A DNA stretch of 64,000 bases from Macrostomum hystrix (lineage: Eukaryota; Animalia; Platyhelminthes). Under the pieces are notes generated by a model. It saw only the letters and a program-made list of their open reading frames with translations. It was not told the origin of the DNA and made no database searches. Each line of letters opens with the position of its first letter. The first letter of the stretch is position 1. Of the stretch, positions 26,100-50,295 are shown piece by piece. The DNA lies in assembly GCA_950097015.1 (NCBI GenBank), contig CATNEN010000003.1, positions 9,796,001 through 9,860,000 on the forward strand, written 5' to 3'. The translations under genes were made by a program, and so were the position numbers.

Positions 26100-26798
26100 T
26101 GTACATCTTGACGAACTTGACCCATGCAGTTCGGGTGGCTCTCAATGGCGTTACCAACGCTGGTGTCGGCGAATTCCAACATGCGACGTTCACCAGCGAC
26201 ACGGTTGAACAGGGCGACTCGACACGACCAGCGCTGCACACAGAGCAACAGGCAGTGTAGCTTTGAGTTCGTAAAAGCGTCAGTGATGCATTATGATGGA
26301 CTGATGTTGCCCAGCTTCAGAAAATATGTCTTTTTAAAATAGTGACTGTTCGGTGTCGCAATAGGCTGGCAGACAACAAACGTTTTATCCGCATCAGCTG
26401 ACCTGTCTCGCAAGCCATCGGCGCTGATTGCCAGAAAGTCGTCCTCTTTCTTAGACCGTTTTCGTAATGTCGGCTTCCATGAGTCACTGTTGTTGAGTAC
26501 AGGAAACAGAGACCCGTTGGCGAATCTCCAACCACACCATGACTTCCCAGCCTCCACCAGTAGGTCCGTCACTCCGATCAAGTAGATCAAGTTCCAGTGA
26601 TTCACAGCTCGGATGGAAGCCAGGTCCATCAGCAGCTCCCGCCGATATCCTGACACCGTCTGGCTGCATCGCACTAGCTGTCGATATTCGAGTCGTTACC
26701 GATGAAGACGCAGCTTCCGAACGGTCACTGAAAGGACTGACGCAGGATCCGGTCACCAGCCCGGCAAGCACAAGCAAGAGTTTTACCTGGCGTGTCAT
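26100..26798 (-). pseudogene. C-type lectin-PAN family pseudogene
   Basis: Homologous pieces (MTRQVKLLLVLAGLVTGSCVSPFSDR; ELLMDL..AVNHW..IGVTDLL..WRFANG; LKLGNISPS*; WVKFVK) are split across frames by indels and stops. Confidence 0.9.
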
Positions 26799-28120
26799 GG
26801 AAAAGCTGGCTGAATAGCTTTGGGGGAATCGAGTCAATGGTGGCAGCAATTAATGTGTTATTGCTCTGCTGAGGGCCAAACAGAGCAGCTCTGGTTCCCG
26901 ATTGATATCATTTTTAATGATGTTACATCCTTGCGATGCCTTTAGTTGTAAAAGCTCCAGAAGTATTTTGCAAACAGAGAAAATCAAACAATTATGTGTT
27001 TGTTAGGCCACAATGCAAAAAGGCTTTACATCATTGAAACTCGCAGAAAATTTTAATGAGTTCTCACGCTTTAGCATAGAAACTTGCTGAATTCAGAATT
27101 GTTTTTCTGAAATTTACGAGAAATGTTGGAGCTAAAAAGTCCCTAAAATAAAAGTTGTTGTAATAAATGTCCTATTAAATAAGCAAAAGCGCACAAAACT
27201 TTTTCTGTTGAAATATTCATGCATGAAACTTGTTCTCCTAATGCCTAATTCTCTTCTCTGTTTCCCTCTTTGTGAGATTTTGTTCCACATTTTTACTTAT
27301 ATAATTGTAAGTGAAAAGAACTTCTCTTTGTCGACCATGTTATTGTCACCAAGGACTTTTTATGAGAAAAATAAACACAAAAACCGTTGGAAATCAGTTA
27401 TCAATCAGTTCGGTGTCTTAAAGTATTTATTTATTGTGGCGCCGTCGGTCCATCGCGGCCAGGCGCATTGATAGCCTGAGCGTGGGCGGGCACGGTGCCG
27501 CCAATGTCCTTTAACTCTTCACTGACCTATTAATGTACATGCCTATTGTGTGGCACGTGGCCACCGCTCAATAATATCGCACGTTGTACTTGTATCTCGC
27601 GTTCTATATAAGTGATGTGACTGATGCACAAATATATTATCGTGTTCGCTCCAAACTAACAAACATAAGAGTCACTCTAAACGACACGACATTTATTATA
27701 TTGATCATCTATCAGAAGTGGCTAGATGAACAAGTCTCGATACTTTTTACTTCCAATGTAAAGTTTGTTATGCAGCATAACAAATTATTCTTTAAAGCGG
27801 TATTTCTACTCGTATCATTATGCAAATCCTTTTAACTTTCCCAAGGTTGCGTTCAAATATCCCTTAAGCTTTAGCCCTATGGAAAAGACGTTTTAAATTT
27901 CCGAAAAATAACGAACCACCTGTGCGGCTCGTAGCTCTGCTAGACTTGCAGCCTGACCGATCGGACCAAAGGTTAACCCCACTTGCAAGCCTCACATGTC
28001 ATCGATATGTCATTGGTAGGAGGAGATCAACGAATTCAAAAAAAGAAAGAATCTTTATAAGGTTAGACAATCCGTCTTAAACTTGTTGGCTTCGTATTTT
28101 TAATTTAAATCTCATAAATT

Positions 28121-28831
28121 TCAGTACGTCTTGACGAACTTTACCCAGTTCGGGTCGGTCTCAATGGTGTTACCAACGCTGGCGTCGGTGAAGTCCAGCA
28201 TGCGACAGGCGCTGCTGGCACGGTTGAACAGGGCGGCTCGACACTCCCAGCGCTGCTCACAGAGCAACAAGCAGTGCGGCTGTGAGCTTGCAGTAGCGTC
28301 AGTAGAGCAGTATGATGGACTGATGTTGCCCAGCTTCAGAAACTCAGTCATTTTGAAATATTTGCTGTTTGATGTCGCAAGGGGCTGGCACACAAAAGTC
28401 TTATCCTGGTGGGCAGTAGATCTGTCTCGAAGGCCTGTTTCACTCACCGCCAGAAAGTCATCGTCGTTTCTATCACTGTTCGGAAGGCCAGACATCCAGT
28501 CAGTGTTATTCAGCTCAGGAAACAAGGACCCGTTGGCGAATCTCCAACCAGTGCGTGATGTCCCAACCTCAACCAGAAGGTCCGTCACTCCGATGAAGTA
28601 GACCGAGTTCCAGTGGTTCACAGCTCGGATGGCAGTCAGGTCCATCAGCAGCTCCCCGCCGATATCCTGACACCGTCTGGCTGCATCGCACCAGCTGTCG
28701 ATATTCGAGTCGTTGCCGATGAAGACGCAGCTTCCAAGCCTGTCAGTGAATGGACTGACACAGGTTGCAGTCACTATGGCGAACATTCCAGATAGTAAAA
28801 TAATCAGATGCCTAGCTATTCTAATAGGCAT
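28121..28831 (-). CDS. Secreted C-type lectin-like + PAN/Apple protein, copy A (intronless)
   Basis: Hydrophobic signal; W-x-DA-RRC-x-DIGGEL, FIGVTD, WRFANG, DWMSGLPN and FVC (CTLD-like); HCLLLCEQRWECRAALFN..ACRML (PAN core C-x3-C-x5-C-x11-C). Confidence 0.88.
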   Translation of the reverse strand: MPIRIARHLIILLSGMFAIVTATCVSPFTDRLGSCVFIGNDSNIDSWCDAARRCQDIGGELLMDLTAIRAVNHWNSVYFIGVTDLLVEVGTSRTGWRFANGSLFPELNNTDWMSGLPNSDRNDDDFLAVSETGLRDRSTAHQDKTFVCQPLATSNSKYFKMTEFLKLGNISPSYCSTDATASSQPHCLLLCEQRWECRAALFNRASSACRMLDFTDASVGNTIETDPNWVKFVKTY

Positions 28832-29450
28832 GTCTAGCAAAGCCGGCAGAATGGAGAGTGCAGAGCGCCTGGCTTCTCAGTTGCCACATTAATTAACAGT
28901 TGTTTCCCTGTAGTGGCTTACTGTATGTTATAAACCTCAACAACAAGTAATTACCTAGTTTGCATTACTTGAACCAATCAAATTTTCCTTAACTATTCTG
29001 TCCTGTCAAGGTTTCCGCGCCTTTGTGCATCTCATTTGAAGCTTCTGCGAAATCTTGCCGCTAGGAAAAGTATTACCTGTATTGAGAAGACAGTTTCATG
29101 CTGACGACGATGACTGAATGCTTGCTAATTGGCACGGGAGCAATTTAAAAGATGTTTTCTGGTGCCTAAATTTATTATAAGCTTCCGCGCTAATTGCCTC
29201 TAGTTACAAAGGACGCTACAAAAGCATGTTGTTCGTCAAAAGTACTAAAGTTTCCTAACTATTGCTCACTCGGAGGACAAAAAGCATCTCATTTAAAAAC
29301 AGATATACTCGTAAATGTGTAAACTTTCCGTGTCTCATTTTAAAAAATAAATTTTACCAATATCTGGGTCCAAAAGTCGAAACTTACGAACGATCTTATA
29401 AATGAGTGGCTTCATTTGGTCTTGCATTGTCCTATTAAGAGGTGTAATAA

Positions 29451-29600
29451 CAGTGTTGGGCGCGATACTTCAACAAATTATCGCTTTAAAGCGATACTCC
29501 GATACCGATCCTCTAAAAGATATCGGCGATATTTGTTGGTCCGATACCAAAATTTGAGTATCGCGCGAATACTTTATTCCGATACATCATTTTTTCGTGT
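29451..29600 (+). mobile_element. Left end of an hAT-like MITE (CAGTGTTGGG plus cgatac subterminal repeats); other end not found
   Basis: CAGTG start followed by clustered cgatac/gtatcg motifs. Confidence 0.4.
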
Positions 29601-30459
29601 TTTCTGTATCTATCAAGCCAAAAATTAATAAAAATCTATTAGCTACATTTTTCGACACTAAATTAGACTCTAGTGAGACGTGGCTGACCAGAGAAGAAGA
29701 TTAAATGGGCGAAATATTGTTATAATTTGTTATATTGTGGTAGCACTCTGATAGTCTTTGTCAATAATAGAAAACTCTTTCAAGTCTGGCCATAGGGCCA
29801 ACTGGCACTGTCACAATTTATAGATTTTCTTGATTCTACACTCGTAAGGCTGATTTTGGCCTTGAGTGCTACTGGTGGAAGCAGTCACAGAAGCATAATC
29901 AACATAAATGACATCATCATCAGTAGACATCATGAGTGTTCAGATCAGAATCAGAACAAAAATGTACATTACTTACATAAACTCGATATAATTTTTGTGT
30001 ATAATAGCCGCGCAGCAGGCTGGCGTGCACCGAGTTTACTTGCTGTTCGAGCGAGTCCGTCAGCGTCCAGGTCTCGGCGTTCTACAGCAGGACGGTCTCG
30101 AACACCTCGACCTAGAACAGCGCCGCCCTCTGCCGATCAGGTAGGGTCTCGGACTGCAGGACCGCCCTAACAGAACGAAAGGCAGCCCATTCGAGCTTGC
30201 GGCGACGCCGCAGATCTTCGCGGACGTCAGGTACCAGACCACCGAGGTAGACGAACTGTTGACAACGCGGAAGCTCCTGTCAACGCCTCCGTAGAAAATT
30301 GCGGCCTCAATGTCACCCGGCACGCAGAGAACGCTCTGCGGTCGAGGACAGAAGGGGGGTCGTCGGCGTAGCCAAGCACGCTGAGCCACCTTTCCGGTTG
30401 ACGTGAACCCTGAAAATAAAGTCTGAAATGTATAAAGAGGCTACAGTCTTTGAACTGTC

Positions 30460-30880
30460 CGACTTTGTGATTATAGCCTGCGTCAGTCCTTTTATTGTCA
30501 GGCTTGGATGCTGCATCTACATCGGCAATGGGTCAAATATTGCCGGCTGCTGCGACCCCGACAGACGGCGTCAGGGAGCTGCTGATGGACCTGAATGCCA
30601 TCCGAGCTGTGATCCACTGGATGTTAGTTCTTACTTCATCGGAGTGACAAACCTTCTGGTCGTGCCCTGAAGATTCGCCGACAGCTCTTTGTTTTTAACA
30701 ACAGCGACTGAAAGTCTGGTTTAACCGAACTTTGCCACAATGGTGACGACGACTTTTTAGTGGTCAGTTTTGCTGGCTTGTGAGAAAGCGAACATAAAGT
30801 TGAAGTGCTAGCCGATAGTGACACGGATAGCCGTTATTTTCTATGGATGGAATTCATGAAACCGTGCAGCATCAGCCTAG
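30460..30880 (+). pseudogene. Degraded C-type lectin-PAN pseudogene
   Basis: ACVSPFIVRLGCCIYIGNG, ggagctgctgatggacctg, YFIGVTNLL and DDDFLVVS, with multiple indels. Confidence 0.85.
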
Positions 30881-32174
30881 CGCTCGCGGCGCTCTTGTCT
30901 TCAATAGCGAAGCTCGTATCCTCAAGACTGTAGCTCGTAATTCGCACGTACTTTTGCTCGAAGTGACACCAATGAGGCAGAGAAGTCTGCTCTCCGCGGT
31001 AGGGAGATGCCTAGGCCAAGGCTCTTGCGCTACTTAAGACGCACGATGGCGTGTCTCAGTTCCATCGTCCTATTGTAAGGCTACACGACGCCACAAATCA
31101 GCGCACCGTCATGCTTGACGCTAATCCGGAAATTCAACTCCTCGATCTTGCAGATCCTTTTGATCCGAACTCTATTCTCAGTGTACGTAGCATTGTTATT
31201 GGATGTCTCATCGAATTGTGACAGTGGAGTCGGGAATGGAACCCCGAATTTCAAGCAAGGACCATTAGAAGAAGGTCTTCTTCTTGTGGTCCTTGCTTGA
31301 AATTCGTCAGTCAGCCGCTCAACTCATTAGGCTACAACATTTTACCACAAAACAAAGATTGCTTGCTGCACGTGGAAAATAATAATGATTGCAAATCCAG
31401 CTTAACACATAGAGACGATAGCTGCATGCCTTCCACCTGATGCGCATCAGTCCACTTCTAGAAGCATGTGGAACCCTTAAATTTTTTAATGGAAAAAGAC
31501 TCAAAAAAGGTTTAGCGGTATAGAAGCGCTCTTCAATGCGATTCTAAGAATGGAAGCATTGCTCCTAAAGGAAACGACAAAATAGAAGAGCACAATGAAT
31601 GTGGGCAAAAGCAACTTCAGAAATTTTTAGTCGTGTAGAACTTTTTATTGTGTAAGTTTTGTCAGAACTAGGGTGATGGAAGATTTTTGTTGCTTTTTTG
31701 CGCGTGGTGGGGAGCCGCTAATTAGAATGCTTCGTAAAACAGGCCCCTTTTTGTCACGGCAAGAAGAAAACTTCAATTTATTAGCTCGTACGAAGTTCGA
31801 CTGGACAAGCTTAATGACATTGCGCTTTATCGTTAGACATTTTCTACTTTAAAGGATATTGCGGCGAAAAGAAACAACCAAAACTATAAAGACGTTTTAG
31901 TGGGACTTTAAAAAATGTTAATTGCGCCAATAGTTCGACCGATTTAGGATTAGCAGATAGAACATACAAATATGGGCGCTATATAATAGTCAGCTTCAGT
32001 TACAAATCAGACAGATAAGCATGAACTTGTAAGACTGGTTGATATTTGTAAAGCTTGAATAAAAATATTTCCAATTTTTTTAATAACCAGAAAATACGAT
32101 GCGAAATGCGTTTTAAGCATCTAACAGATAAAAAACTGAGTTCAATCGATTTCTGAATTTATGCACGCATAAAA

Positions 32175-32882
32175 TCAGTACTTCTTAACGAACTTGACCC
32201 AGTTCGGGTCAAGTTCGATGACGTCACCAACGCTGGAGTCGGCGAAGTCCAGCATGCGACAGGCGCCGCTGACACGGTTGAACAGGGCGGCCCGACACTC
32301 CCAGCGCCGCACACAGAGCCACAGGCAGTGCATCTCCGAGCTTGTAGAGGCGTCAGAGTAGCAGTAGGATGGACTGATGTTTCCTAGCTTCAGAAAGTCA
32401 GTCTTTTCAAAATAGTGGCTGTTCGGTGTCACAATCGGCTGGCACATAAAGCTGGTGTCAGTATCAGGCGGTCGGTCTCGCAGGCCTGCAACACTAACCA
32501 CCAGAAAGTCGTCATCGATGCTTGCAGAGTTCGGCAAACCAGACATCCAGTCGCTGCTGTTTAGCACCGGAAATGGAGAGCCGTTGGCGAATCTCCATTT
32601 GCTTCGGGACCCACCAGCCTCGACCAGGAGGTCCGTCACTCCGATGAAGTAGTATTGGATCCAGTGGTTCACAGCTCGGATGGCAGTCAGGTCCACCAGC
32701 AGCTCCCCGCCGATATCCTGACACCGTCTGGCTGCGTCGCACCAGCTCGAGACGCTCAAGCCATTGCTGATATAGACACAGCTACCGAGCCTGTCAGTGA
32801 ATGGACTGACACAGGCTGCTGTCACGAAGGCAATCAGTCCGGATAGTATTAAAATCTGACGTTTAGCGTCTTTTAAAGTCAT
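32175..32882 (-). CDS. Secreted C-type lectin-like + PAN/Apple protein, copy B
   Basis: Intact paralog. The ATG at 32882 precedes the signal peptide, and an upstream in-frame ATG also exists at 32984. Confidence 0.88.
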   Translation of the reverse strand: MTLKDAKRQILILSGLIAFVTAACVSPFTDRLGSCVYISNGLSVSSWCDAARRCQDIGGELLVDLTAIRAVNHWIQYYFIGVTDLLVEAGGSRSKWRFANGSPFPVLNSSDWMSGLPNSASIDDDFLVVSVAGLRDRPPDTDTSFMCQPIVTPNSHYFEKTDFLKLGNISPSYCYSDASTSSEMHCLWLCVRRWECRAALFNRVSGACRMLDFADSSVGDVIELDPNWVKFVKKY

Positions 32883-34459
32883 ACCAACAACTATCTGAAG
32901 GTTTGAGTGCAGGCTGCAAATATTTTTTGAATATTCAGCTAAGAGTCTTTCCGTATGTGCCAGAAATGTTTGCTGAATTAGCATGTATTTACATTAAGGT
33001 CCCTTTTCATATGCTTCTGGCACCCAATGAGAATGAAAGCATGAATAGACCTGTTCTGAATCAGCCCATCACTTCTGTCTGAATTTTTTTAGAGACGATG
33101 CTGCCAATTCTGTGACTTGAATGTTAAACTAATTTTTTCAGCCAAATGACCTGTCTTGTAGTTGTAACGCACGACAGCTTCGATAGTACTATTAGTACGT
33201 ATATCAGATTGCTTTTGTTAATGCGAAGATCTTCGAGTTCTACACACTAAGAATGAGTCTAAATCGCTAAAACCTGGACGCTGGCTGAGGTACTCGAGGG
33301 ACAGCTCACGGGACCCAGCTTCGGGCGACGTTCGGGGACCATCATGGCTCTGTCAGCGAGACGATCGACTCTCTTTACAAGCGTTCAGAGCCTCTGGCAT
33401 TCTGCCCTTTCTTTATTTTCTAAGCGTATCACTGACGCAGCGCCGCCAATTTAGCGGGGCTGCTTCCGCGTCTTCGGCGGTCGTTCGAGGAGCAGATTCT
33501 CGACGGTATCTATATGGCTTGCAGCAGACTTTGCCGAGCAAACTTGCTCGCTTCCTTTGCTCCAGCCTCAGCGAAGCTCAGGCTGTTCGGCGTCGGCTGT
33601 ACAGTTTACAGTTCTCTACATGTTTAGAATGTACAGCTGTCGGCTGCACATCTGGCCCAATCGGGGCAGGTGTAGTCAATTATTTATTTTAGCGAATCTT
33701 CGTAAGCCATTGCCGACAAAATTAGCAGGCGTATTACCATCTAACGATAATTGTTTCAGGTGTAAAATATTGATGATTGCAAAGCTAGCTGAACGCCCAG
33801 AGACAATGGCTCCATGCCCAATGCCTTCCGCTTTGTGGGCAAAAAGTCCACTTCTACGCGCTAGAAGCATCTCGCGCCCTAAAGTCTCTTTTAAGTGAAA
33901 TTATCTCAAGAACGGCCCGGCCTTTAAGCCCACTTGTACGCGCTAAAAGAAGACGATGAAAAATTAGAAGCAGATTCCGAAGTAATCTGGTGTAATTTTT
34001 TTAATGAGCAGTTTTTTCAGAACTTGGACAATAGGATGATGGGAATTTTACCTTCCTTTGTGGAATGTATTTTACTACAAGCCCTTTTTTCCGTCGACTG
34101 CTCTGACTAAAAGCGTTAGGTATTCATGCCGCTGACGCATGTTAGCCTTAATTAAAGAAAATCGCAATTATTTTGTACAAAAACTTTTGGACCATTAAGG
34201 CCGTTGGACAACATTCTAATCCTTTTAATTGCACAGCAGCGCGAACTTTTAGAAGGCTCGCAAAGCTTCATCTCTTTTTTACTGAGTTGAACGTTAATTT
34301 ATTTCGAGTTCGTCAACCCGGCCAGAACTCGAGTTGACAATATCTATGTGTAATACATGAATACATGTGTTATCATTACAGCAAGTATTATTGCTGGTCA
34401 AACGAACTGTTCCTCCAGAATAAAACTGTGTCATTAATGCGGAAATAAAGCAAAGTGTC

Positions 34460-34715: not shown

Positions 34716-34855
34716 TCGCGGACACTGTTGAAATGAGTTCTTTGAAAATTGTTGAAGTAGACGGGTGTATTTTCCACTTTTCATTTTACTGTAATTGTAA
34801 AAACTGTCCTTAGAGATATTCTAATTCCGTTTGCCAGTTAAGCTCTCTTGACTGC

Positions 34856-35253
34856 TCAGTACTTCTTGACGTACTTGACCCAGTTCGGGTCAAGTTCGAT
34901 GACGTCACCAACGCTGGAGTCGGCGAAGTCCAGCATGCGACAGGCGCCGCTGACACGGTTGAACAGGGCGGCTCGACACTCCCAGCGATGCACACAGAGC
35001 CACAGGCAGTGCAGCTCCGCGCTTGCAAATTCATCAGTGAAGCAGTAGACTGGACTGATGTTGCCCAGCTTCTTTTTTAAATACTGGCTGTTCGGTGTCG
35101 CCATCGGCTGACACACTAATCTCTTGTCATGAGCATTAGTAGATCTGTCTCGCAAACCCTCTTCACTCACCACGAGAAAGTCATCGTCGTTTCCATTGCC
35201 ATCTGGGCGGCCGGGCATCCAGTCAGTGTCATTGAGCTCAGGAAACAGGGACC
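34856..35253 (-). pseudogene. 5'-truncated C-type lectin-PAN copy C
   Basis: Homology begins abruptly at GSLFPELNDTDW with no signal peptide, and a 12-nt in-frame deletion removes TEFL. Confidence 0.88.
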
Positions 35254-36369
35254 CTTATGTCCTTAGATGATATTTTTTAAGTAATACGATATTTAAGGCT
35301 GCACAGCAATTAAATTAATCTATTTTTGACACTACTTGTAAGTAATATGGCAAGACATTTAGAAGAAAATGAAAATGAAATGAAAACTGCCGCATCAATA
35401 TATAGTAGAAAGTCTAAATCAGATGTGACGAAAAAAATGATCGGTACTGGAGATCATTTGCTTGACAGTTAAGTTTGCCAATCAATTATTTTTTAAATTA
35501 ATTTTCTTAACTAAAAGCTGTCTACATTTCTTCTTGTTTTATTTAGAAAAACGTTTTTTTCAAACTTCAATGTCACAAATTCACCTGCCAATTCATTAAA
35601 AAATATAAATTAAGAATGCCTGTCATCTGCGAAAGAGGAATGAATAGAATGCTTGAAGGTACGACAATAGTCTTAAGTCAATAATTAAAGATGGTGGTAT
35701 AACATGTCAAATTTGTTGACAAGGAACAATGTGTCACGGGGAATCCAAAAGATAAGCGCGCTTCTTTCCAAGAGTCGAAAAATTTGCACGCACCTGCAAT
35801 TTAGTCGCAGTAGCCAATTAGTTGTATGAGTACGTACTATTGAGTTTGTGTATTCAAAGGCAATACCATTCAAAGGCATTAAGGAAAGAAAAGCTGCTTT
35901 CAATTTAAAATATATCAAGCCAGTGCCACTTGTCAGAGGCTGTATGGTATAAAACGTCTCCATTTTAGAAAACCAGAGCAAAATGAAGGAGCAATCGACC
36001 ATGGTTTTTCAAAAGGTTTTTACGAAACGCATCCAGAGCTCCACTTGTTTCGCATTTTTGAAACTCTATGGTTTCTCAAACGGAAGGCAGTTGCAGTCGA
36101 AAAATTGCCATAGACAATTGATAGTATATTAGGGAGCAAGACGTGGGTTTCAAATTCTAAAATTTAACGCAGTTTTTGTCACATATTCAATGCTATCCGT
36201 GCACGAGTATACACTCAGCAACATTTAAAACGCAACACTCTAACTAGAAGAAAAATCAACTCACTCAGAAGAGTCAAAGCGCATAGTCTATGGTTCAAAT
36301 CGAGCTTCAGAAACGCGTGTAGCTTCCTCTACAACACTCTAACTAGAAGAAAAATCAACTCGACGTAAT

Positions 36370-36810: not shown

Positions 36811-37545
36811 CAGGGGTCGGCAAACTCCCGCCTGCGGGCCAGATACGGCCCTCAAAGCTCTTAAATCCGGCCCGTTGCCACTTCCGACACAAATAGTATA
36901 CTGTTTCAATCTTTCCCCCTGTCTCATCTCTGCCGTGTGTTATCTCTCCCGTGTGTCATCTCTGCCGTGTGTCATCTCTCCCGTGTGTCATCTCTCCCGT
37001 GTGTCATCTCTCCCGTGTCTCATCTCTGCCGTGTCTCATCTCTCCCGTGTGTCATCTCTCCCGTGTCTCATCTCTCCCGTGTCTCATCTCTCCCGTGTCT
37101 CATCTCTCCCGTGTGTCATCTCTGCCGTGTCTCATCTCTCCCGTGTCTCATCTCTCCCGTGTCTCATCTCTCCCGTGTGTCATCTCTGCCGTGTCTCATC
37201 TCTCCCGTGTCTCATCTCTCCCGTGTCTCATCTCTCCCGTGTCTCATCTCTCCCGTGTCTCATCTCTCCCGTGTGTCATCTCTCCCGTGTGTCATCTCTC
37301 CCGTGTCTCATCTCTGCCGTGTCTCATCTCTCCCGTGTCTCATCTCTCCCGTGTCTCATCTCTGCCGTGTCTCATCTCTGCCGTGTCTCATCTCTCCCGT
37401 GTGTCATCTCTCCCGTGTCTCATCTCTGCCGTGTCTCATCTCTCCCGTGTGTCATCTCTCCCGTGTCTCATCTCTGCCGTGTCTCATCTCTCCCGTGTGT
37501 CATCTCTGCCGTGTCTCATCTCTCCCGTGTCTCATCTCTCCCGTA
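36811..37545 (+). mobile_element. hAT/Charlie-type MITE left end carrying a 16-bp minisatellite (36915-37543)
   Basis: TIR CAGGGGTCGGCAAACT preceded by gtctagaa, subterminal gcgggccagatacggccc, then a (tctcccgtgtctcatc)n array. Confidence 0.82.
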
Positions 37546-37761: not shown

Positions 37762-38466
37762 ATGGTCAAAAAGTTACATCACAAGTTCGCAATAGTGCTT
37801 GCACTTTTTGCGGTAGTTAGGGGACAGTGCGTCAGTCCATTCACTGACAGGCTCGGAAGCTGCGTCTTCATCGGCAACGATCCGACTGTCTCGAGCTGGT
37901 GCGACGCAGCCAGACGGTGTAAGGATATCGGCGGGGAGCTGCTGATGGACCTGACTGCCATCCGAGCTGTGAACCACTGGATCCAATACTACTTTATCGG
38001 AGTGACGGACCTACTTGTTGAGGCTGGGAAGTCACGAAGAGGTTGGAGATTCGCCAACGGGTCCCTGTTTCCTGAGCTCAATGACACTGACTGGATGCCT
38101 TTTCTGCCGAATAGTGCAAGCCAAGATGACGACTTTCTGGCAGTTAGTGTCGCTGGCTTGCGAGACAGGCCTGCTAGAGTGGATAAAAAGTTCGTTTGCC
38201 AGCCAGTCGCCACGCCAAACAGTTCCTATTTTTTAAGAGTGGACTTTCTAAAGCTGGGCAACATCAGTCCATCATACTGCTACACTGACGAATCTGCGAG
38301 CTCGGAGCCGCACTGCCTGTGGCTCTGTGAGCAGCGCTGGGAGTGTCGAGCCGCCCTGTTCAACCGTGTCAGCGGCGCCTGTCGCATGCTGGACTTCGCC
38401 GACTCCAGCGTTGGTGACGTCATCGAGAGCGACCCAAGTTGGGTCAAGTACGTCAAGAAGTACTGA
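37762..38466 (+). CDS. Secreted C-type lectin-like + PAN/Apple protein, copy D
   Basis: Intact paralog, MVKKLHHKFAIVLALFAVVRG-QCVSPF... Confidence 0.88.
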   Translation: MVKKLHHKFAIVLALFAVVRGQCVSPFTDRLGSCVFIGNDPTVSSWCDAARRCKDIGGELLMDLTAIRAVNHWIQYYFIGVTDLLVEAGKSRRGWRFANGSLFPELNDTDWMPFLPNSASQDDDFLAVSVAGLRDRPARVDKKFVCQPVATPNSSYFLRVDFLKLGNISPSYCYTDESASSEPHCLWLCEQRWECRAALFNRVSGACRMLDFADSSVGDVIESDPSWVKYVKKY

Positions 38467-39571: not shown

Positions 39572-39737
39572 CCGCTCGGAGCCGCACTGCCTGCGGCTCT
39601 GTGAGCAGCGCTGGGAGTGTCGGGCGGCCCTGTTCAACCGTGTCAGCGGTGCCTGTCGCATGCTGGACTTCACCGACGCCAGAGTTGGTGACGTCATCGT
39701 GAACGACAAAATCTGGGTAGAGTACATTAAGAAGAAC
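39572..39737 (+). pseudogene. PAN-domain-only fragment of the lectin-PAN family
   Basis: SEPHCLRLCEQRWECRAALFNRVSGACRMLDFTDARVGDVI. Confidence 0.85.
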
Positions 39738-42369
39738 TCAACAGTCAACTCAGTGCTGAATGAAAATGTATCCAATCTACATGATTTAATTAAAAGTAAC
39801 TATTTGCAAGAGCTAGCTTTCGAGCATTAAAGGACAAAAATACGACAGTATATTCCCACTAAGCTAGCTTATTTTCAGAATACTGTTTAAGTTATGTAAT
39901 AGGCCTCTAAAATATTAATTCTCTACAAGTTAAATTTACGCAATTTTCCGAGTAAATTTGTTAGAATTGTAAAATAATTCTCAATAATAGTTTTTTAAAT
40001 AAGCACTGTCCAATATATATTTTGTAATAAAATTATGTTTATAATCGCAAATAAAATACTATATGAGCAGAGGGTTCTCAGAGAGGAAAATAACCCTCGT
40101 GTGCCTTCGGGACAACTTTCCTTACAAACAAGTGAACAAAATATACCAAAGGATTTAATAGTTTGTTCTTATTAGAATCTATACCTGAACAGAGTGTTCA
40201 GAGAAGGAGAAAGATTTACCTGAACAATAAAGTTCAGAGGATATATAAACAGTTGACCTGAATAGGATATTCAGAGGATAACCAGAGTAATTCCCGAAGA
40301 AGTACTTTCGGAGAGTAATACCCGAATTTTTTAGTCCATTCATAGGTGTATAAGGGCCTATCGTGTGACCCTTTAATCCACAGGTACCCCTGACGGATTG
40401 AGTGCATAACCTGTGCCAAAAACCTCTCAGGCCACGTATACCCGTACAAAGAGAGAAAGAGAGAGAAGCGCTACCCTAGAGAAATAAAAGTACATTTAGT
40501 TGTAAAAAATAAGGAATATCTTCGAACATTCCTCTGATAGCAGTCCCTAATTCTGCTTGTTGGCAGCGCTACTAGTAACGTGAGTAATAGTAACCAAAAG
40601 GTAGAATTGGTATTAATGAGAGTAGAGACAGTAATTGTGAGAGTGTAACATTACAGTAGAGAATATTAAAGGGAGAGCCCTGTAGCAACTTTGGTAACAG
40701 CGGTGGGATTTTAAATATAAGAAATATAGCCCTACAACAGTTAGATAGATATATTAACTACACCTAGCCCATTGTGCATTTCAACTCGATGTTCAGCTAG
40801 TGGTAAGTAGTACAGCCACATTTTTGCACGGGACCCACAACGGCTGTAAACATTCCAGTACTTGGACTGGGAAAGCAGCAATAGCTATAGCGCTTCAAGT
40901 TTGGTGTTCCTCTTCTTCTTCACTCGTAGTTTTCCTATACTTTGTCTAGCGGTTTATTGCAGTCTAAAAGTCTTGAAGGCTATAACTCCTAACGACTATC
41001 GATACTCAGTATACCGGCTGGCAGTGGTGATCTCTCTAGATCGTTATCACTGATTCTACTTAAGAAAGAACGCAAACACAGTGATTTTCTAAACGGAGCT
41101 CAAAGTGAGTCTCTAACTAACCGGAGCGGCGAATCTTTTTCCGCGCTCTGCACCAATATATATAATGTCTTTAAAACCCTCGATCCGAGGGGAAGAAAAT
41201 ACCATAGCAACAGTACGCATGAGAATTTGGGGTGAGTGAGGTCGCAGCCTCGAGTCTAGTACAGTTATTTTCATTAGACTAGTTGGTTAGCAGGCACGCC
41301 AACCCATTTTCTATGGGAGGTGGGGAAAAGTCCTGAAAATACCTTAGTTGAGTTAGGATGCGTTCCCACTTCTACGGAGACCTCTTTCCTACTGTTCATT
41401 ATCCCCTTTCCTTTCATCGATCCCGTCTTCTTGTGCGGTCCCGTCCTCCTCCAGATCTCGTTCCCGATCGGGTCCGGGCGGCTCCCAATTCGGGCTGGGC
41501 TGGGTCGATGCCGGCAGCAGCGGGTCGGGACAGGCCGGGTTGATTCCGGCAGCGCCACGTCAGCGCAGCTGCAGGTCCGGTCTCGGGCCATTCCACGTCA
41601 GCATAGCTGCGGGTCCGGTCTCAGGCAGTTCCACGTCAGCCCCGCTGCTGATCCGGTTTCAGGAAGCTCCACGTCGGCACAGCTGCTGTCATGCCGAACC
41701 GGGTTTGTGCTGAAATGATTAAGTGATCTCGGGGCGGGTTTTGTCTAATCTTTCTCCTGTCAGTTGCTCGCCCTCTCTGCTGCTGCTATTTTTAGCTTTT
41801 AGTTTTCTGCTAACGAACTCTTAAATTCCCTTCAGATTTCTACGTCTTATAATAGCCTCTGTTGCGGGCTCGTGTAGGAGAACTCAAGGAAGAATTCAAT
41901 TATAAACATAATATTACGCAGAAAAGTTTAGTGCAGGATTTCCGAAACTTTTGAGGCTAGGAAATAGCTTGTACACCCAATAAGATACACTCAAAGAAAT
42001 TAAGAGAGACAGCCCCAATTCGCATGTCAAAGCGAGTTGTAGAAGCGAATAAATGTGCTAAATGTTTTCACAAACGGCTGTTAGCTACAATGAGTTAGAC
42101 CCAATTCTGCACTCAAAATAGATCTTACGAGTACATCTTAAATCAAGCAGGATAGATTAAGGCAAAATATGGACATTACGTTTTTTATCTGTAAAAAATG
42201 AATCGGGTGAAACAAAAACTTACATCCAATACGGGCACATGTCTCAAATTATTTAAGTTTATTTTTTATCGTCTGTACTGAGCTCAGTTGGTTAAATACC
42301 ATATTATTTTTTGTTGCGAATCTGGATTTACGTTTGAATACTATAAACAGCACCGCTAGTAACAGGTTG

Positions 42370-42489
42370 AGCCACCCTGTTCAACCGTGTCAGCGGCGCC
42401 TGTCGCATGCTGGACTTCGGCGACTACAGCGTTGATGACGTCATCGAGACTGACCCGAACTGGGTCAAGTATACGTCAAGAAGTACTGA
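42370..42489 (+). pseudogene. 3'-terminal fragment of the lectin-PAN family
   Basis: ccctgttcaaccgtgtcagcggcgcctgtcgcatgctggacttc...gtcaagaagtactga with a 2-nt insertion, plus the shared 3' flank gcagtcaagag. Confidence 0.85.
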
Positions 42490-44094
42490 GCAGTCAAGAG
42501 AGATTAGTTCGCACCGACAGAATCCAATATGAGACCGACTAAGCGGTGCAGAGTTTGCTCTGGGAATGGGTCAGCCAAGGAGATCTGGATCTAGAAACTG
42601 GAGAGACAACTCAATGACTCATCCATCAAGCAGGACAGACCTGCAGGCAAAGATCGACACTTGCTGAGTACATCAAGAGCTAAAGTGCAGCAGGCAGTTT
42701 CATCCCACGTGACAAGTTTATATTACGTATTAAAATACGAGATAAAATAATACATAAAGATTAACACTGACACTCTAAACATGTCTCAGTACTCAATGTG
42801 GGTCAGATACTCGTAGATGATAGATCAATACTTCAAAATACTCGTAGAAATACAAAAGCAGCATTTTATTTTCAATCAATTGAAATGAAACAATAAAACA
42901 AAAAATACACCTAAGAAGGGCAAATGTCTCAGGCTTATCAGGCTTACTTTTGAATATGTTTGAGCTGAGCATCAGTTGGTTAGATACCGTCACGTTTGTC
43001 GGGCATCGGTTTTTACCTTTGAATCCTAAACAGCAATGTGCTGCTTCTTGCCTGTCAAGCTGCACCCTTGGCTCTACAGTAACTGTCGATTGAAGCTCAT
43101 AATTTGCTTAGTGAAGCCCATGAAAAACAGAACTAGCGTTGATGATCCAGTAAAAATACTTTCTGTATACTTAAATAATAGTGTGAGCTAGATTTTGGTA
43201 GTAGACTTTGACAGGTTAAAAAGCATAGCGTCAATTTACTGTCGCCCGTCACATCCTCGTTAGTGCATCAAAGCAGAGGCTTATACTACATGTTGGTTTG
43301 ATACAGCTCCATTAACAAGCGTCGATCACGCAGCATTTTAGCTTCGTTTCTATCGTGTTACGAAAAAAAGCAAAAACGGACAGACCGTTTTCCGCCGCCA
43401 GAAACTGCCTTGTAAAGTGATGCAACAAAACTAGCAGAAGCTGTGCAGAGTTAAGGCTCTTAACTGCAAAGGACCACAAACAGCTTTAGAGTAAAATCGG
43501 AATCAATCCACACCGTAAGGTCGTATATGTCTGACGCTTGAATGAAAAGGTAACAACTCGACGTACTTTTTTTCAAGAAAACATTGAGACAATGTTCGGT
43601 GAAATTTGAAAACCGAGTAGGCACTTTGCCCATTCCTGGAACCCCTGAGAACACTGGAACATGGAGACACACGAAGGCCACATTCACAAAAGTAAGCACA
43701 TCTTCCACCATAATCAGGCTGTGCTAACTCTCACTGTGTACTCTGGAACCTTAAGCCTTCTCTTCACAGCTGCGCCACACAAATTACCGCAGCATTCTCA
43801 AGATCTGCTATCTGCGTCTGCAGCTCACGCTCCAGAGACTAACATGAGTAAACTGTTGCGTGTACTCACCAGGCAAGCAGATATCACTGAGAAACTCATT
43901 AAACGGTAGTTTGTTGCTGCCCAGCTGTGCTTCACAAACCATTGGGTGCTTCTTCGGTTGCGAGAACAACTTTACCGAGCATTGTAGCAGATGCAACAGC
44001 TTAGAACGGGTTTTATTGGCTCATTGGCTATTGGTGGTAGCAACAATATAAAATGTTATCGCCAATAGAATACTTAGTGCATGTTTTGCATGCG

Positions 44095-44805
44095 ATGGCG
44101 GCTAAACTACAGCTTTCTCATCTAACACTGATTGTGACGCTAATTGCCACAGCTTCAGGACAGTGCGTCAGTCCATTCATTGACAGGCTCGGTAGCTGCG
44201 TCTACATCGGCAACGATCCGACTGTCTCGAGCTGGTGCGACGCAGCCAGACGGTGTAAGGATATCGGCGGGGAGCTGCTGATGGACCTGACTGCCATCCG
44301 AGCTGTGAACCACTGGAACACGGTCTCCTTCATCGGAGTGACGGACCTACTGATTGAGGCTGGGGAGTCACGAAGAGGTTGGAGATTCGCCAACGGGTCC
44401 CTGTTTCCTGTTCTCAGAAACAGCGACTGGATGCGCGGCCGCCCAGACGGCAGTAGAAACGACGATGACTTTCTCGTGGTGAGTGAAGAGGGTTTGCGAG
44501 ACAGATCTACTAATGCTCAGGACAAGAGATTTGTGTGCCAGCCGATGGCGACACCGAACAGCCAGTATTTAAAAAAGACTGAGTTCCTGAAGCTGGGCAA
44601 CATCAGTCCAGTCTACTGCTTCACTGACGAATTTGCAAGCTCGGAGCTGCACTGCCTGTGGCTCTGTGTGCATCGCTGGGAGTGTCGAGCCGCCCTGTTC
44701 AACCGTGTCAGCGGTGCCTGTCGCATGCTGGACTTCACTGACGCCAGCGTTGGTAACGCCATTGAGACCGACCCGAACTGGGTGAAGTTCGTCAAGACGT
44801 ACTGA
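44095..44805 (+). CDS. Secreted C-type lectin-like + PAN/Apple protein, copy E
   Basis: Intact paralog, MAAKLQLSHLTLIVTLIATASG-QCVSPF... Confidence 0.88.
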   Translation: MAAKLQLSHLTLIVTLIATASGQCVSPFIDRLGSCVYIGNDPTVSSWCDAARRCKDIGGELLMDLTAIRAVNHWNTVSFIGVTDLLIEAGESRRGWRFANGSLFPVLRNSDWMRGRPDGSRNDDDFLVVSEEGLRDRSTNAQDKRFVCQPMATPNSQYLKKTEFLKLGNISPVYCFTDEFASSELHCLWLCVHRWECRAALFNRVSGACRMLDFTDASVGNAIETDPNWVKFVKTY

Positions 44806-44821
44806 GCAGTCACGAGAAATG

Positions 44822-45522
44822 ATGCGGCCCAGATGCGGCCCTCGAAGCTCCCAAATCCAGCCCTTTGTCCCTTTCAACATTATATAGTATATGGTCTCAC
44901 TCTCCCGTGTCTCATCTTCCCCTGTCTCATCTCTCCCCTGTCTCATCTTCCCCTGTCTCATCTCTCCCCTGTCTCATCTCTCCCCTGTCTCATCTCTCCC
45001 CTGTCTCATCTCTCCCCTGTCTCATCTCTCCCCTGTCTCATCTCTCCCCTGTCTCATCTCTCCCCTGTCTCATCTCTCCCCTGTCTCATCTCTCCCCTGT
45101 CTCATCTCTCCCCTGTCTCATCTCTCCCCTGTGTCATCTATCCCTTGTCGCATTTCTCCCGTTTCTCATCTCTTCTATGCCGCATCTATCATCTATCATC
45201 GATTCCATCTTATCTATCCCGTGTCTCTTCTCTCCCCTGTCTCATCTATCCCGTCTCATCTCTCCCTTGTCGCATTTCTCCCGTTTCTCATCTCTTCTAT
45301 GCCGCATCTATCATCTATCATCGATTCCATCTTATCTATCCCGTGTCTCTTCTCTCCCCTGTCTCATCTATCCCGTCTCATCTCTCCCTTGTCTCATCTC
45401 TCCCGTCTACAATTTCTCTTTCTCATCTCTCCCCTGTCTTATATTCCTACAGTCCATGTGGCCCTCTGTGGTCTTTCAGGTTCTCTCCGTAGCCCGCAAG
45501 CTAATAAGTTTGCCGACCCCTG
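44822..45522 (+). mobile_element. hAT/Charlie-type MITE lacking its left TIR, with an internal 16-bp minisatellite
   Basis: ggcccagatgcggccctc, a (tctcccctgtctcatc)n array, and right TIR AGTTTGCCGACCCCTG, the reverse complement of the 36811 TIR. Confidence 0.85.
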
Positions 45523-45719
45523 ATATAGACTGTCTATCGCTCAAATCAGTCTATCTAGTATTTTTACAGTATCGTTTTCCAAATACGAGCTTCACTCAAT
45601 TTTTAACCTGCTATATCTACTACTATACAGCTCTACGCCTTTAAAACTGAAACGGAAACATCTTTCTTTTGTGTATCAAGACTGATTTAATTAGTGTTTT
45701 CCGATCCCGATCTGTTGAA

Positions 45720-46430
45720 TGCCTTCAAGACAAGTAGCACGGACGGCAACTTTCATGTGGACGCTGTTGTCATCACCAGGATTCCTTGAAGATCAGGCCG
45801 TTTTTAGGCATTGTGTATGACATTTACCGAACCAACTTCTGCCCGAATCAGGACGTTTTAGTCGATAAAGACTTAATAATGTGCAAAGGCAGTTCAAGCC
45901 CAAGAAGAGCGCTAGATTTGGCATAAAGTTCTACTGTCTTACAGGGGCTTTCATCAGATTTCTGTGAACATTCTTCAATCGGACCTAGAATGAATTGCTG
46001 AAATTTATCTTTCAGTGAGAGGATTTTTGTCGAGCTGAGCAAAGACTGGCTGGACTTGGGCTAAAGGATTTATTGAGTCGGCTGGTTCACGTCGCTTCGC
46101 CTGGTTCAGTTTATGCTCGAACGTAATCGCATTATAACGGGACGCTGAGGGTCGACCGAGGCATCGATAACGAGCTAAAGATGCTCACACTTACAACCCT
46201 TGAGAGTCACTATAACATGCGCCCGAGTGATGTTTTTGCCGTCAAGCTGGTTGACAGAAAGGCCAGCGGTCGCAAAACTATGCACCTTTCGGACACCAAC
46301 AGCGTGCTGGAAGTACAGAAGTAAGGCGAGTCATTCGAGGTTGTGTGATCGAGGGGCAGGTGGCATCAGAAGGTCGGATTTGATATTTTGCTTCAGTTGG
46401 TGCGCAATGGAAGGATATGTTACTGCCAAC
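45720..46430 (+). mobile_element. Degraded piggyBac-like transposase remnant
   Basis: Hand translation gives QFKPKKSARFGIKFYCL (~45891) and GWFTSLRLVQFML (~46080), matching piggyBac P.KP.KYGIK and DNWFTS motifs; frameshifted. Confidence 0.65.
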
Positions 46431-46872
46431 ATAGCAACAATGTGCTGCTTCTTGCCTATCAAGCTGCACTCCTTGGCTCTACAGTAACTTTCGATTGAAG
46501 CTCGTATTTGGCTCAGTGAAGACAATTAGCGTTGATGACGTCATCCAGTAAAAATATTTTCTGAGTACTTAAATAACCGTGCGAGCTAGATTTTGATAGA
46601 AATGGTTTGACGGGTCAAAAATGTAGCGTCAATTTACTGTCGCCCGTCACATCCTCGTTTGTGCATCAAAGCAGAGGCTTATATTACATGTTGGGTTGAT
46701 ATGACTTCATTAAGACGTGTTGATCACGCAGCGTTTTTGCTTCGTTTCACAAATCATGCTACAGACGGAGAGAAAAAAGGGTTTAACTGATATACTTTTC
46801 CGCTTGCAGACAGACGGATCGATTTTCGCCATAAGAAATTTCTTCGTAGAGTGCTGCGATTGCATCAAGGCG

Positions 46873-47453
46873 ACAAAAACTATGCATCTATCTGTAGTAT
46901 CATAGTAACAAGTGTCTGAATACAAAAACTATGCATCTATCTGTAGTATCATAGTAACAAGTGTCTGAATACAAAAACTATGCATCTATCTGTAGTATCA
47001 TAGTAACAAGTGTCTGAATACAAAAACTATGCATCTATCTGTAGTATCATAGTAACAAGTGTCTGAATACAAAAACTATGCATCTATCTGTAGTATCATA
47101 GTAACAAGTGTCTGAATACAAAAACTATGCATCTATCTGTAGTATCATAGTAACAAGTGTCTGAATACAAAAACTATGCATCTATCTGTAGTATCATAGT
47201 AACAAGTGTCTGAATACAAAAACTATGCATCTATCTGTAGTATCATAGTAACAAGTGTCTGAATACAAAAACTATGCATCTATCTGTAGTATCATAGTAA
47301 CAAGTGTCTGAATACAAAAACTATGCATCTATCTGTAGTATCATAGTAACAAGTGTCTGAATACAAAAACTATGCATCTATCTGTAGTATCATAGTAACA
47401 AGTGTCTGAATACAAAAACTATGCATCTATCTGTAGTATCATAGTAACAAGTG
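46873..47453. repeat. Perfect 49-bp tandem repeat, about 11.8 copies
   Basis: aaaactatgcatctatctgtagtatcatagtaacaagtgtctgaataca, no variants seen. Confidence 0.97.
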
Positions 47454-49584
47454 ATGTGCTGTAGACTGCTGAGCAGCCTCCAGGCAATCTGTGAGTCAGG
47501 CTGTTCTAGGTCTGTGGGAGGGCTAGGGGTTGGTAGTTAGTGTTTCCCGTGCACTGTCACTTCCGCTCGCCACCCCCCTCCTCTCTCGTTCTCTCTTTCC
47601 AGCTCTGTCTGCGCACTAAGTCACATTGCACACCATTGTGCAATCGCTTAAGTTCGGAAGAAGACTGGCATAACAACGCTCAAATGCTCCTACTATGAGT
47701 AGAGCACAGTCCGACGAATTCTTGAGATGGTGTTAGTGCCGTGGTAAACACAACTTCTGTACGAATATGCACGTTTCTTGTCTCCAGTCTTCATTCCGTT
47801 TTGCGACACTTACGTCTTGCATCCCTTGCAACTCTTGCATTGTTGGTGTCCACGTTTGCGAGCTAAACTACTGCTAACTTATAGTGAAGTTAGACCGTGT
47901 ACTGCGTTTCGAAGCAGAGTACATCGTCAGATTTCAGAGCAGAACTAGGTTGCAAGAATCATTGTTTGATTCAAGGCAAGACCGAGAAAACTAGGTAAAT
48001 CTAGCCTGACTACCGGGTTGTCCACTGCTACGAAGCATTCAGTGTTGAGGCCGGTAAAATCTCTCTCTCTCGGAATCTGGTTCCTGTCTTGGTTATTTGC
48101 CAATTGTGTGTGCCACGCTACCACAGGTACAACACAAGTGTCTGAATACAAAAACTTCAGAGCGACCATAATCAGTATTTTAATTGTAAATGATATCACA
48201 CTAATGGTAAAACAAAATATATTGTTACACTGACCTAATTACGTCAGATGTGCAGCCAACATCACAGCTGTAGCTATTGCTGATCAGCCCATCGACTTAA
48301 GGGCGCCACACCCACCTAGAATTACCCAGCTATTGCTGATTACAATTTAACAGCTGGGTGAACTGAACCAGTGCAGAATTAAGAGTCGTAATTGCAAAAT
48401 ACACATTAAGCTTCGATTTATTCCGGAATCTAGCTACTAACAATGGGAGAGGAATTTACTGCTGCTGGCACGAGGGCTAAGGTCACTGGTCTGGGGCACA
48501 CAGTCCGTGCGGCGTATCAGGATTGATCAAAGTTGCCTGGTGAAAGTCCTTCGCATTCTCACTTCCTTTCCTCTGTGGGGTCCGGGATTAGTACTCGTAC
48601 AGTTTCATTAGGGGATTAAGGCGGAGTTTTTGTGACTTCAGGGGCGTGTTTAAGGAACCTGATCAGGTGGACTTCGGGTAGACTTCAGGTGAACTTTTAG
48701 GTGGGATTCAGGGCAGTATATTTGGGTTTCATAGGGGTCATATAATAGGGTGGATTTGGGTGAAGAAGGCTGATAATAGGTGTTTGGGAGAGGATTGGGA
48801 AGGTAGAGGGATTTATCCGTTTATTCCTATTAGAAAATGACTAAGGAACTCGGTTTATTTGGTAGCGAGCACAATTCTGGAGCAGAACGGGGAAAATTGG
48901 TAGGAGGTGGATCGCTTCCAGGTTGCTGCAATTTATTTCTCTCTGTATTTTTACACCGAAATTGGGGTGGGTGTGTTTCATGCTTGAGTGCGCGCAAATA
49001 ACGAACGAAGAGTATTGCGTGAATATTACGATAAGTAGCTAGCGCGTGAGGAAGAAAAGTGGCGGGAATTAAAATAAGAGAAAGAGCCTAATTATTCGCT
49101 GCCTCAGTAAGAAGGCCACATTCACACAAGTGAGTACATCTTTCCCCATCGTCAGACAGTATAATCTCTCACTGTATACCACGAATTCGCCCATATGGAC
49201 TCAAGTTTCATCACAGGCCTCAAGCCTTCTCTCCACAGCTGCGCCCCACAAATTAAAGCAGCATTCTCAAGCTCAGGGACATCTGTTTAAGAGTCGGACG
49301 CTTTACTGCTCAATGCAGCTCATGTCCCTGTGACTAACATAAGTAAACTGTTGTGTGTACACAAAAGGCAAGCAGATATCACTGAGAAAATCATTAAACT
49401 GCAGTTTGTTTCAGTTGTGCTTCACAAACCATTGGGTGCTTCTTCGGTTGCGAGAATAACTATATCGAGCATTGTTGCAGTTGCAACGACCTAGAACGGC
49501 TTTTATTGGCTAATTGGCTATTGGTGGTAGCAACAGTATAAATTTTTATCATCGATAGAATACTCAGTGCATGTTTTGCATGCG

Positions 49585-50295
49585 ATGGCGGCTAAACTAC
49601 AGCTTTCTCATCTAACACTGATTGTGACGCTCATTGCCACAGCTTCAGGACAGTGCGTCAGTCCATTCATTGACAGGCTCGGTAGCTGCGTCTACATCGG
49701 CAACGATCCGACTGTCTCGAGCTGGTGCGACGCAGCCAGACGGTGTAAGGATATCGGCGGGGAGCTGCTGATGGACCTGACTGCCATCCGAGCTGTGAAC
49801 CACTGGATCCAATACTACTTCATCGGAGTGACGGACCTACTGGTTGAGGCTGGGAAGTCACGGAGTGGTTGGAGATTCGCCAACGGGTCCCTGTTTCCTG
49901 AGCTCAATGACACTGACTGGATGCCCGGCCGCCCAGATGGCAATGAAAACGACGATGACTTTCTCGTGGTGAGTGGACAAGGTTTGCGAGACAGGTCTAC
50001 TAATGCTCAGGACAAGAAATTTGTGTGCCAGCCGATGGCGACACCGAACAGCCAGTATTTAAAAAAGACTGAGTTCCTGAAGCTGGGCAACATCAGTCCA
50101 GTCTACTGCTTCACTGACGCCTCTACAAGCTCGGAGATGCACTGCCTGTGGCTCTGTGTGCGGCGCTGGGAGTGTCGAGCCGCCCTGTTCAATCGTGTCA
50201 GCAGCGCCTGTCGCATGCTGGACTTCGCCGACTCCAGCGTTGGTGACGTCATCGAGACTGACCCGAACTGGGTCAAGTTCGTCAAGAAGTACTGA
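49585..50295 (+). CDS. Secreted C-type lectin-like + PAN/Apple protein, copy F
   Basis: Intact paralog; the upstream ~470 bp and the N-terminus are shared with copy E. Confidence 0.88.
   Translation: MAAKLQLSHLTLIVTLIATASGQCVSPFIDRLGSCVYIGNDPTVSSWCDAARRCKDIGGELLMDLTAIRAVNHWIQYYFIGVTDLLVEAGKSRSGWRFANGSLFPELNDTDWMPGRPDGNENDDDFLVVSGQGLRDRSTNAQDKKFVCQPMATPNSQYLKKTEFLKLGNISPVYCFTDASTSSEMHCLWLCVRRWECRAALFNRVSSACRMLDFADSSVGDVIETDPNWVKFVKKY

Follow-up and report, generated by a model that had tools for sequence, protein, structure and literature searches.

Gene conversion between duplicated genes has textbook cases in the globins and in the major histocompatibility complex (MHC). The Sp185/333 (SpTransformer) genes of sea urchins and the FREP genes of Biomphalaria are clustered, secreted immune genes, and the immunoglobulin (Ig) genes of the chicken undergo conversion from pseudogenes. 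Interparalog gene conversion and concerted evolution have been described for the GOT1 paralogs of Tigriopus (PMC3728101), and the context of the FREP genes is given in PMC10875847. Here we analyse a window of 64,000 nucleotides (nt) of the flatworm Macrostomum hystrix (assembly GCA_950097015.1, 220,453,370 bases in 42 contigs), namely positions 9,796,001-9,860,000 of contig CATNEN010000003.1 (C3 below), which holds a cluster of genes with the architecture signal peptide, long-form C-type-lectin-like domain (CTLD) and PAN/apple domain. Like the Sp185/333 and FREP genes, those of the window are clustered, mixed in orientation, intron-poor, secreted and mosaic, with simple repeats nearby. We propose, at a probability of about 0.8, that the mosaic was made by germline non-allelic gene conversion among the paralogs of this Macrostomum-specific family of secreted CTLD+PAN proteins.

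Ten copies of one gene and their mosaic pattern

Using gene F as the query of a tblastn search, we found exactly ten family copies, lying between 26.1 and 50.3 kb of the window and on both strands: five intact genes, two pseudogenes and three fragments. A preliminary description of this DNA had arrived at the same census, which the open reading frames (ORFs) and the search bear out. Genes A (28121-28831, minus strand), B (32175-32882, minus), D (37762-38466, plus), E (44095-44805, plus) and F (49585-50295, plus) are intronless, each a single unbroken frame in the ORF listing, and A, for instance, has the signal peptide, CTLD and PAN domain intact. The core of B pairs with the out-paralog O2 (C3:8.49 Mb), and D is an intact mosaic, E/F-like at nt 88-360 and similar to O1 (C3:5.60 Mb) in its core (nt 369-510). 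E is the sister of F and the recipient of at least three short patches, and the sequence of F is supported by independent contigs. The pseudogene P1 (26101-26800, minus) is matched by tblastn in three frames and carries 1-nt deletions, frameshifts and in-frame TAG/TAA stops; P2 (30428-30861, plus) is a strongly decayed copy, with about 35% amino acid identity by tblastn and 70-76% by blastn. Fragment C (34856-35254, minus) comprises the C-terminal 137 codons of a member of the E/F lineage, fragment G (39574-39741, plus; tblastn, blastn and alignment) the final ~55 codons and fragment H (42371-42490, plus; tblastn and alignment) the final ~37. Paralogs within the cluster are 80-93% identical. 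As judged by blastn, nucleotide homology between copies extends from about nt 88 of the coding sequence (CDS), where the mature protein starts, to the stop codon; upstream homology (~330 bp) is found within the cluster for E and F only, and downstream homology (~100 bp) for C and F only.

The preliminary description had noticed that similarity switches partner along the genes, and had read this as repeated segmental exchange between the copies. The mosaic pattern is visible in the nucleotide alignment, and both the observation and its reading are supported by the tests that follow here. The pairwise homoplasy index (PHI) on A, B, D, E and F gives p<=0.001, unchanged when P1 is added. Maximum chi-squared tests with permutation on triplets, each a gene and two partners, reach p<=0.001 for F(E|D), F(E|B), C(E|F), C(E|B), E(A|C), D(F|B) and B(F|A), and the 5' part of P1 resembles A, with 15 of 15 sites A-like at nt 117-248 in P1(A|F) (p=0.003). 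Maximum likelihood (ML) trees of the segments conflict, the bootstrap values being 99 for (A,P1) at nt 88-243, 99 for (E,F,C) and 98 for (D,O1) at nt 361-553, and 81 for (B,F) at nt 554-726. No one tree describes the whole length: the whole-gene tree fails approximately unbiased (AU) tests in three of four segments (nt 88-243, p=0.008; nt 244-360, p=0.002; nt 554-726, p=0.009). Sawyer-type tests, which like PHI are independent of the chosen segment boundaries, find that D and F agree at 43 polymorphic sites in a row (nt 129-254; global p=0.006), in a tract shared between D and E/F (37869-37994, plus). Further runs join D to E (global p=0.037), B to F (nt 554-605, pairwise p=0.003) and B to D (nt 614-687, pairwise p=0.0007). 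The switches adjoin the near-invariant stretches that had been named before: AIRAVNHW, which ends at nt 243, WRFANG (nt 304-321), KLGNISP (nt 520-540) and RWECRAALFNR (nt 598-630).

Direction of exchange and the case against it

The clade of E, F and C is young, with a proportion of synonymous differences (pS) of 0.08-0.11 in the core. Between E and F there are 47 differing sites, which are clustered (p=4e-4), and at 34 of these 47 both states occur in other paralogs, where random mutation would lead one to expect 16.5% (p=4e-17), the expected share rising to ~45% when variable sites only are counted. Fragment C, being of the E/F lineage, served to polarise the differences between E and F, and D was used as well for nt 242-359. 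Four patches can be polarised in this way. In E, the first patch (nt 242-251; 44318-44327, plus) consists of seven clustered changes, five of which match A. The second (nt 335-348; 44411-44424, plus) is B/P1-like at 3-4 of 7 sites where C matches F; with C as the reference, E is derived, and B/P1-like, across nt 335-359. The third covers the C-terminus of the PAN domain (nt 639-722; 44715-44798, plus), where C again matches F, and E is derived and A-like at 7 of 10 sites; the A-like end of E had been pointed out earlier. The triplet E(A|C) gives p=0.001, with A resembling the patches of E at nt 242-251 and 661-722. F in turn is the changed copy at the start of its PAN domain (nt 554-597; 50120-50163, plus), where C matches E and F is B-like at 7 of 7 sites, in agreement with the B-like segment that had been assigned to it. 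Here F(E|B) gives p=0.001, the run shared by B and F falls at nt 554-605, and the patch is bridged by an independent contig. We also considered F as the recipient of a tract from D (nt 244-360) and rejected it: synonymous sites favour E, and C and D share the state of F. The switch of F to D as partner in the preliminary description is therefore to be read in the other direction, E being the copy that changed at nt 242-359.

Exchange has not only set E and F apart. Over CDS nt 1-243 (49567-49809 in F, plus) they are 99.2% identical, with no difference at 36 synonymous sites, versus 85% identity in the 166 nt upstream, which indicates that exchange recently homogenised them too. A and B are inverted relative to E and F and lie 16-17 kb away from them, an arrangement that fits conversion without crossover.

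Several points weigh against gene conversion as the source of the pattern. PHI on strictly synonymous columns of seven intact genes, an underpowered test with 22 informative sites, gives p ~0.3-0.5, and synonymous-only triplets are not significant for the tracts of F, for which parallel selection on amino acids or the sorting of old variants is formally a possible origin. For the second patch of E, no exact donor was found. The segment boundaries of the AU tests were picked after inspection of the data. Finally, the assembly was polished with Pilon, and the direct independent check described below covers F only, E and D being reached through paralog contigs that map onto F.

The synonymous results bear on an explanation without recombination, in which parallel or convergent amino acid substitution, together with regional rate differences among old duplicates, would mimic exchange. 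Besides the synonymous PHI, it has in its favour that the partner switches of F are carried chiefly by nonsynonymous sites. We nevertheless consider it very improbable, since partner switches are significant on synonymous sites alone for D, in D(F|O1) (p=0.001), D(F|B) (p=0.002) and D(E|O1) (p=0.004), and for the 3' end of C, in C(E|B) (p=0.0025). Of the 14 synonymous sites in the core of D (nt 369-510), 13 are O1-like, and of the 14 in its flanks, 13 are F-like. The sharing of synonymous changes, which the preliminary description had named as a check, is thus borne out for the core of D against its flanks and for the 3' end of C, and not for the tracts of F or in the seven-gene PHI. Moreover, pS between D and F goes from 0.03 at nt 88-243 to 0.69 at nt 361-553 while that between A and B goes from 0.22 to 0.47, so that relative pS changes sign between the segments, and rate variation cannot explain this reversal. 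The changes are also clustered and multinucleotide, third positions included, and match other paralogs, and the CDS of E and F is more alike than the flank that adjoins it.

The assembly was made from PacBio reads with canu, followed by polishing with Arrow and Pilon (PMC10468722), and since the paralogs are so similar (80-93%), mis-polishing between them with short reads is a legitimate concern: Pilon could have mis-mapped reads and so written variants of one paralog into another. To assess this we used contigs from other sequencing runs (X1, X2, X3 and X5) mapped to the region 47500-52500 around F, which was chosen to avoid two long tandem arrays between E and F. X2, which belongs to a 2020 study separate from the 2023 assembly study, contains a 311-nt contig that matches 49867-50177 with no mismatch; it corresponds to nt 301-611 of the gene and hence runs from the E-like core of F into its B-like patch. 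Four further X2 contigs are free of mismatches, and seven X2 contigs jointly cover 49633-50389. X3, likewise from a study other than that of the assembly, contributes a 730-nt contig along the CDS (49587-50295) that differs at four positions, three of which lie at the contig end. Contigs of the E/C type and of the D type that map onto F show the assembled states of E and D at 10 of 10 listed sites, and tracts such as nt 88-360 of D exceed in length what polishing errors at the level of reads would produce. Independent contigs thus reproduce F across the junction, which argues against a polishing chimera, the fault that the preliminary description had suggested looking for. The patches of E, D and C are confirmed in part, and we hold an assembly artefact to be extremely improbable.

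The same contigs bear on expression. Contigs of the D type occur in X1 and X2, and one of the A type in X2 (with a loose end at 49720). X2, X3 and X5 cover only the gene, the ~100-140 nt that follow it on the 3' side and another small ORF, while X1 covers everything, at ~63x; in the runs of the 2020 study coverage at F extends over 49587-50436 and intergenic DNA is uncovered. X2, X3 and X5 are RNA-like and may well be the RNA-Seq data of PMC7336406, and genes A, D and F are apparently transcribed.

Protein fold, family and surroundings

We infer from the architecture that the proteins are secreted. An AlphaFold (AF2) model computed from an alignment of 36 family members (predicted local distance difference test score, pLDDT, 87; predicted template modelling score, pTM, 0.81) has the double-loop alpha/beta fold of CTLDs in its N-terminal domain (Foldseek probability 1.0, TMt 0.65-0.78), the top matches being CD23, CL-K1, DC-SIGNR and SIGN-R1. 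At the sequence level, the window copies give no match to Pfam Lectin_C (PF00059) at E<=1; phmmer against the PDB weakly matches residues 38-163 to the carbohydrate recognition domain (CRD) of DC-SIGN (E=3e-4), and among distant paralogs L031 passes the Lectin_C cutoff of 22.6 bits (24.1) and L042 falls below it (20.2). With CTLD proteins such as CD23, DC-SIGN/DC-SIGNR, SIGN-R1 and the collectins the window genes share the fold, the C1-C4 cysteine pair (C54 and C148, invariant across the 36 members) and the long-form N-terminal pair, also conserved. They differ from them in lacking the C2-C3 disulfide, whose cysteines are kept in distant paralogs and replaced (DDDF..., RDR...) in the window subfamily and its nearer relatives. 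They differ as well at the EPN/QPD position, which reads RPD in E and F and LPN in A, B and D, and at the WND position, which reads LRD; some distant paralogs retain EPN/EPS. The canonical motifs of Ca2+ site 2 (EPN or QPD, plus WND) are absent from the window copies, and judging from these residues Ca2+-dependent sugar binding by the window subfamily is doubtful. The preliminary description had spoken of lectin-PAN proteins: both folds are there, but the sugar motifs are degenerate, and "lectin" is here the label of a fold and not of an activity, which is unproven. The ligands of these proteins are probably extracellular, either glycans or other proteins.

The C-terminal domain scores close to the cutoff of Pfam PAN_1 (PF00024; 21.4 bits), with A (24.2) and D (21.5) above it and B (20.2), E (20.5) and F (20.2) just below. 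A model of the C-terminal ~80 residues alone (pLDDT 90.9) has the PAN fold, a beta-sheet packed on one helix, and all its top Foldseek matches are PAN/apple modules (probability 0.97-1.0, TMq 0.55-0.69, with modest E-values of 0.02-0.3), among them plasminogen, the N domain of HGF, leech antiplatelet protein, Eimeria PAN, Sarcocystis SML-2 and TgMIC4. Three cysteines never vary, and most members have a fourth. Compared with the plasminogen N-terminal domain, the HGF N domain, leech antiplatelet protein and the MIC4/SML-2 apple lectins, the window proteins thus have the fold and cysteine pattern in common, with a sequence likeness that is borderline (20-24 bits around the Pfam cutoff). In the papers searched we found no description of the small CTLD+PAN combination, nor of the family and its expression.

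The family, which the preliminary description had not recognised, is a large one. A tblastn search of the whole assembly yields at least 121 matches, most of them single open frames of ~240-290 amino acids, clustered on contigs C38, C39, C8, C25 and C7. In one group on C8 (L024-L030, 0.28-0.50 Mb) the matches break at about residue 98-100 into two blocks ~90-900 bp apart, a pattern that points to an intron immediately ahead of the GW(R/Q)xANG motif, unlike the intronless genes of the window. A search with F as a single sequence against a set of 5.8 billion proteins gave no match, and relatives were reached only through the family profile, which in 1.84 billion representative proteins finds many full-length matches of ~240 amino acids. 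Among the matches that we looked up, those whose source names an organism are solely from Macrostomum (proteins of M. lignano). One of these, UniProt A0A1I8HX01 (720 amino acids, annotated as a guanylate cyclase), contains an entire family member at residues 447-670, with 76% identity to F, and is probably a fused gene model.

Mosaicism extends beyond the cluster. O1 (L004, C3:5,602,902) and O2 (L007, C3:8,491,203) are dispersed single copies nested in the diversity of the cluster; we had considered them as outgroups and rejected them in this role, O1 grouping with D and O2 with B. At a distance of 4.2 Mb, O1 agrees with E and F in its signal peptide and ~160 nt of 5' flank, and with D in its core. 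The placement of O1 and O2 would imply exchange or movement across 1.3-4.2 Mb. PHI is also significant (p=0.0005) in each of two other family clusters, the 5.7-Mb cluster and the 27-Mb group of C38. Downstream of the window on C3, a decayed copy of the subfamily (L051, 9,983,300-9,984,700; ~73% nucleotide identity, with frameshifts) lies at a distance of 124 kb. A cluster at C3:9.965-9.982 Mb, 105 kb downstream, was considered as a source of additional copies and set aside; it gives only weak CTLD matches (27-36%) and represents a related but distinct family.

Tandem Repeats Finder (TRF) places a 16-bp minisatellite ~200 bp upstream of D (39 copies, 36916-37544) and another of the same unit family ~90 bp downstream of E (35 copies, 44894-45439); a third, at 4888-5408, stands away from any family gene. 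The repeat is open in all three frames and produces spurious ORFs of 200 amino acids. We rejected it as a promoter of recombination throughout the family: its occurrences are confined to the flanks of D and E and to 4.9 kb, and it is absent from the other family loci that we fetched. Between E and F, a 49-bp tandem repeat (46873-47453, 11.9 copies) is 100% identical, which suggests a very recent expansion or an effect of the assembly consensus. Upstream of F, at 47500-48500, the contig depth of X1, a DNA run, is 8,000-12,600 compared with ~63 in unique sequence, and hence this is a high-copy repeat, probably a transposable element. Beyond F, an ORF of 92 amino acids (52160-52438, minus) has a signal-peptide-like N-terminus and many cysteines, and RNA-like contigs cover 51948-52487; it is likely to be the gene of a small secreted Cys-rich protein. 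Unrelated neighbours are exons of PP4R3 (SMEK; 15506-19874, minus), an ORF with a PLAT/LH2 domain (121-1134, plus) and a fragment of a P-element/THAP9-like transposase (62702-63214, plus), and 8-21.6 kb is dense in long minisatellites.

Mechanism, selection and known systems

As to the repair mechanism itself, we infer that homology-dependent repair without crossover would copy tracts of ~10 to ~270 bp between paralogs. Near-invariant stretches would supply the homology for strand invasion, and tracts would hence start and end there. Sequence would have passed in this way between inverted copies, from A to E and from B to F, and the remote paralogs O1 and O2 would also have taken part. The N-terminal part of the CTLD and the PAN domain, where pS has its ceiling at ~0.2, would evolve in concert, and the deeply diverged central block, from the EPN-loop to beta5 and the linker (pS 0.3-0.9), would preserve the identities of the lineages. 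Short patches would set the young duplicates E, F and C apart.

Selection might, alternatively, maintain the cluster as a generator of adaptive diversity, with pseudogenes and fragments as donors, for combinatorial recognition in immunity, mucus or reproduction. Several features fit this: the family has many secreted, clustered members, is specific to the lineage and shows a recombination signal throughout; P1 and the three fragments have been retained, F, D and A at least appear to be transcribed, there are minisatellites beside D and E, and the patches fall in surface loops of the CTLD (the alpha2-beta2 loop and the long loop) and in the PAN domain. We nonetheless regard this as unlikely. 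By crude pN/pS we saw no diversifying selection in any region: values are 0.18-0.62 for all lineage pairs and regions, the block from the EPN-loop to beta5 included, and the putative binding loops show no excess. The sole value above 1, between E and F at nt 244-360, was created by the conversion patches. Moreover, exchange is lowest in the block of highest divergence (nt 361-553), none of the pseudogenes could be identified as an exact donor, and the minisatellite is not a feature of the whole family. Exchange homogenises as much as it diversifies. For these reasons, and because of the degenerate sugar motifs, the conversion-diversified recognition repertoire of the preliminary description is not upheld. 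By analogy with the Sp185/333 or FREP genes one might go further, and suppose that Macrostomum flatworms keep more than 100 secreted CTLD+PAN binders in which germline conversion, with retained pseudogenes and fragments among the donors, is favoured for shuffling surface cassettes, possibly with variation between individuals or somatic cells; this we think quite unlikely. In the Sp185/333 genes sequence elements form mosaics of presence and absence, a pattern not seen in our alignment, and the window genes differ from them also in having no dN/dS excess and a minisatellite beside two genes only.

Germline gene conversion among the paralogs, as proposed here, is an ordinary mechanism, and its adaptive reading is unproven. 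The cluster provides, for a flatworm, a statistically well-supported instance of short-tract conversion among paralogs that are inverted or far apart, in an assembly whose contiguity lets donors and recipients be seen, and it defines a large family of secreted CTLD+PAN proteins that is found only in Macrostomum among matches of named source. If the family acts in immunity, mucus or reproduction, it would be a tractable case for weighing homogenisation against the shuffling of cassettes. As in families with ectopic conversion of the GOT1 type, the trees of the window genes are incongruent along the gene, short templated tracts are bounded by conserved sequence, homogenised regions stand beside a divergent "island" and new combinations appear in young duplicates. 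What sets the locus apart from such cases is that the exchange takes place in a flatworm-specific secreted CTLD+PAN family, between copies in inverted orientation and with paralogs megabases away.

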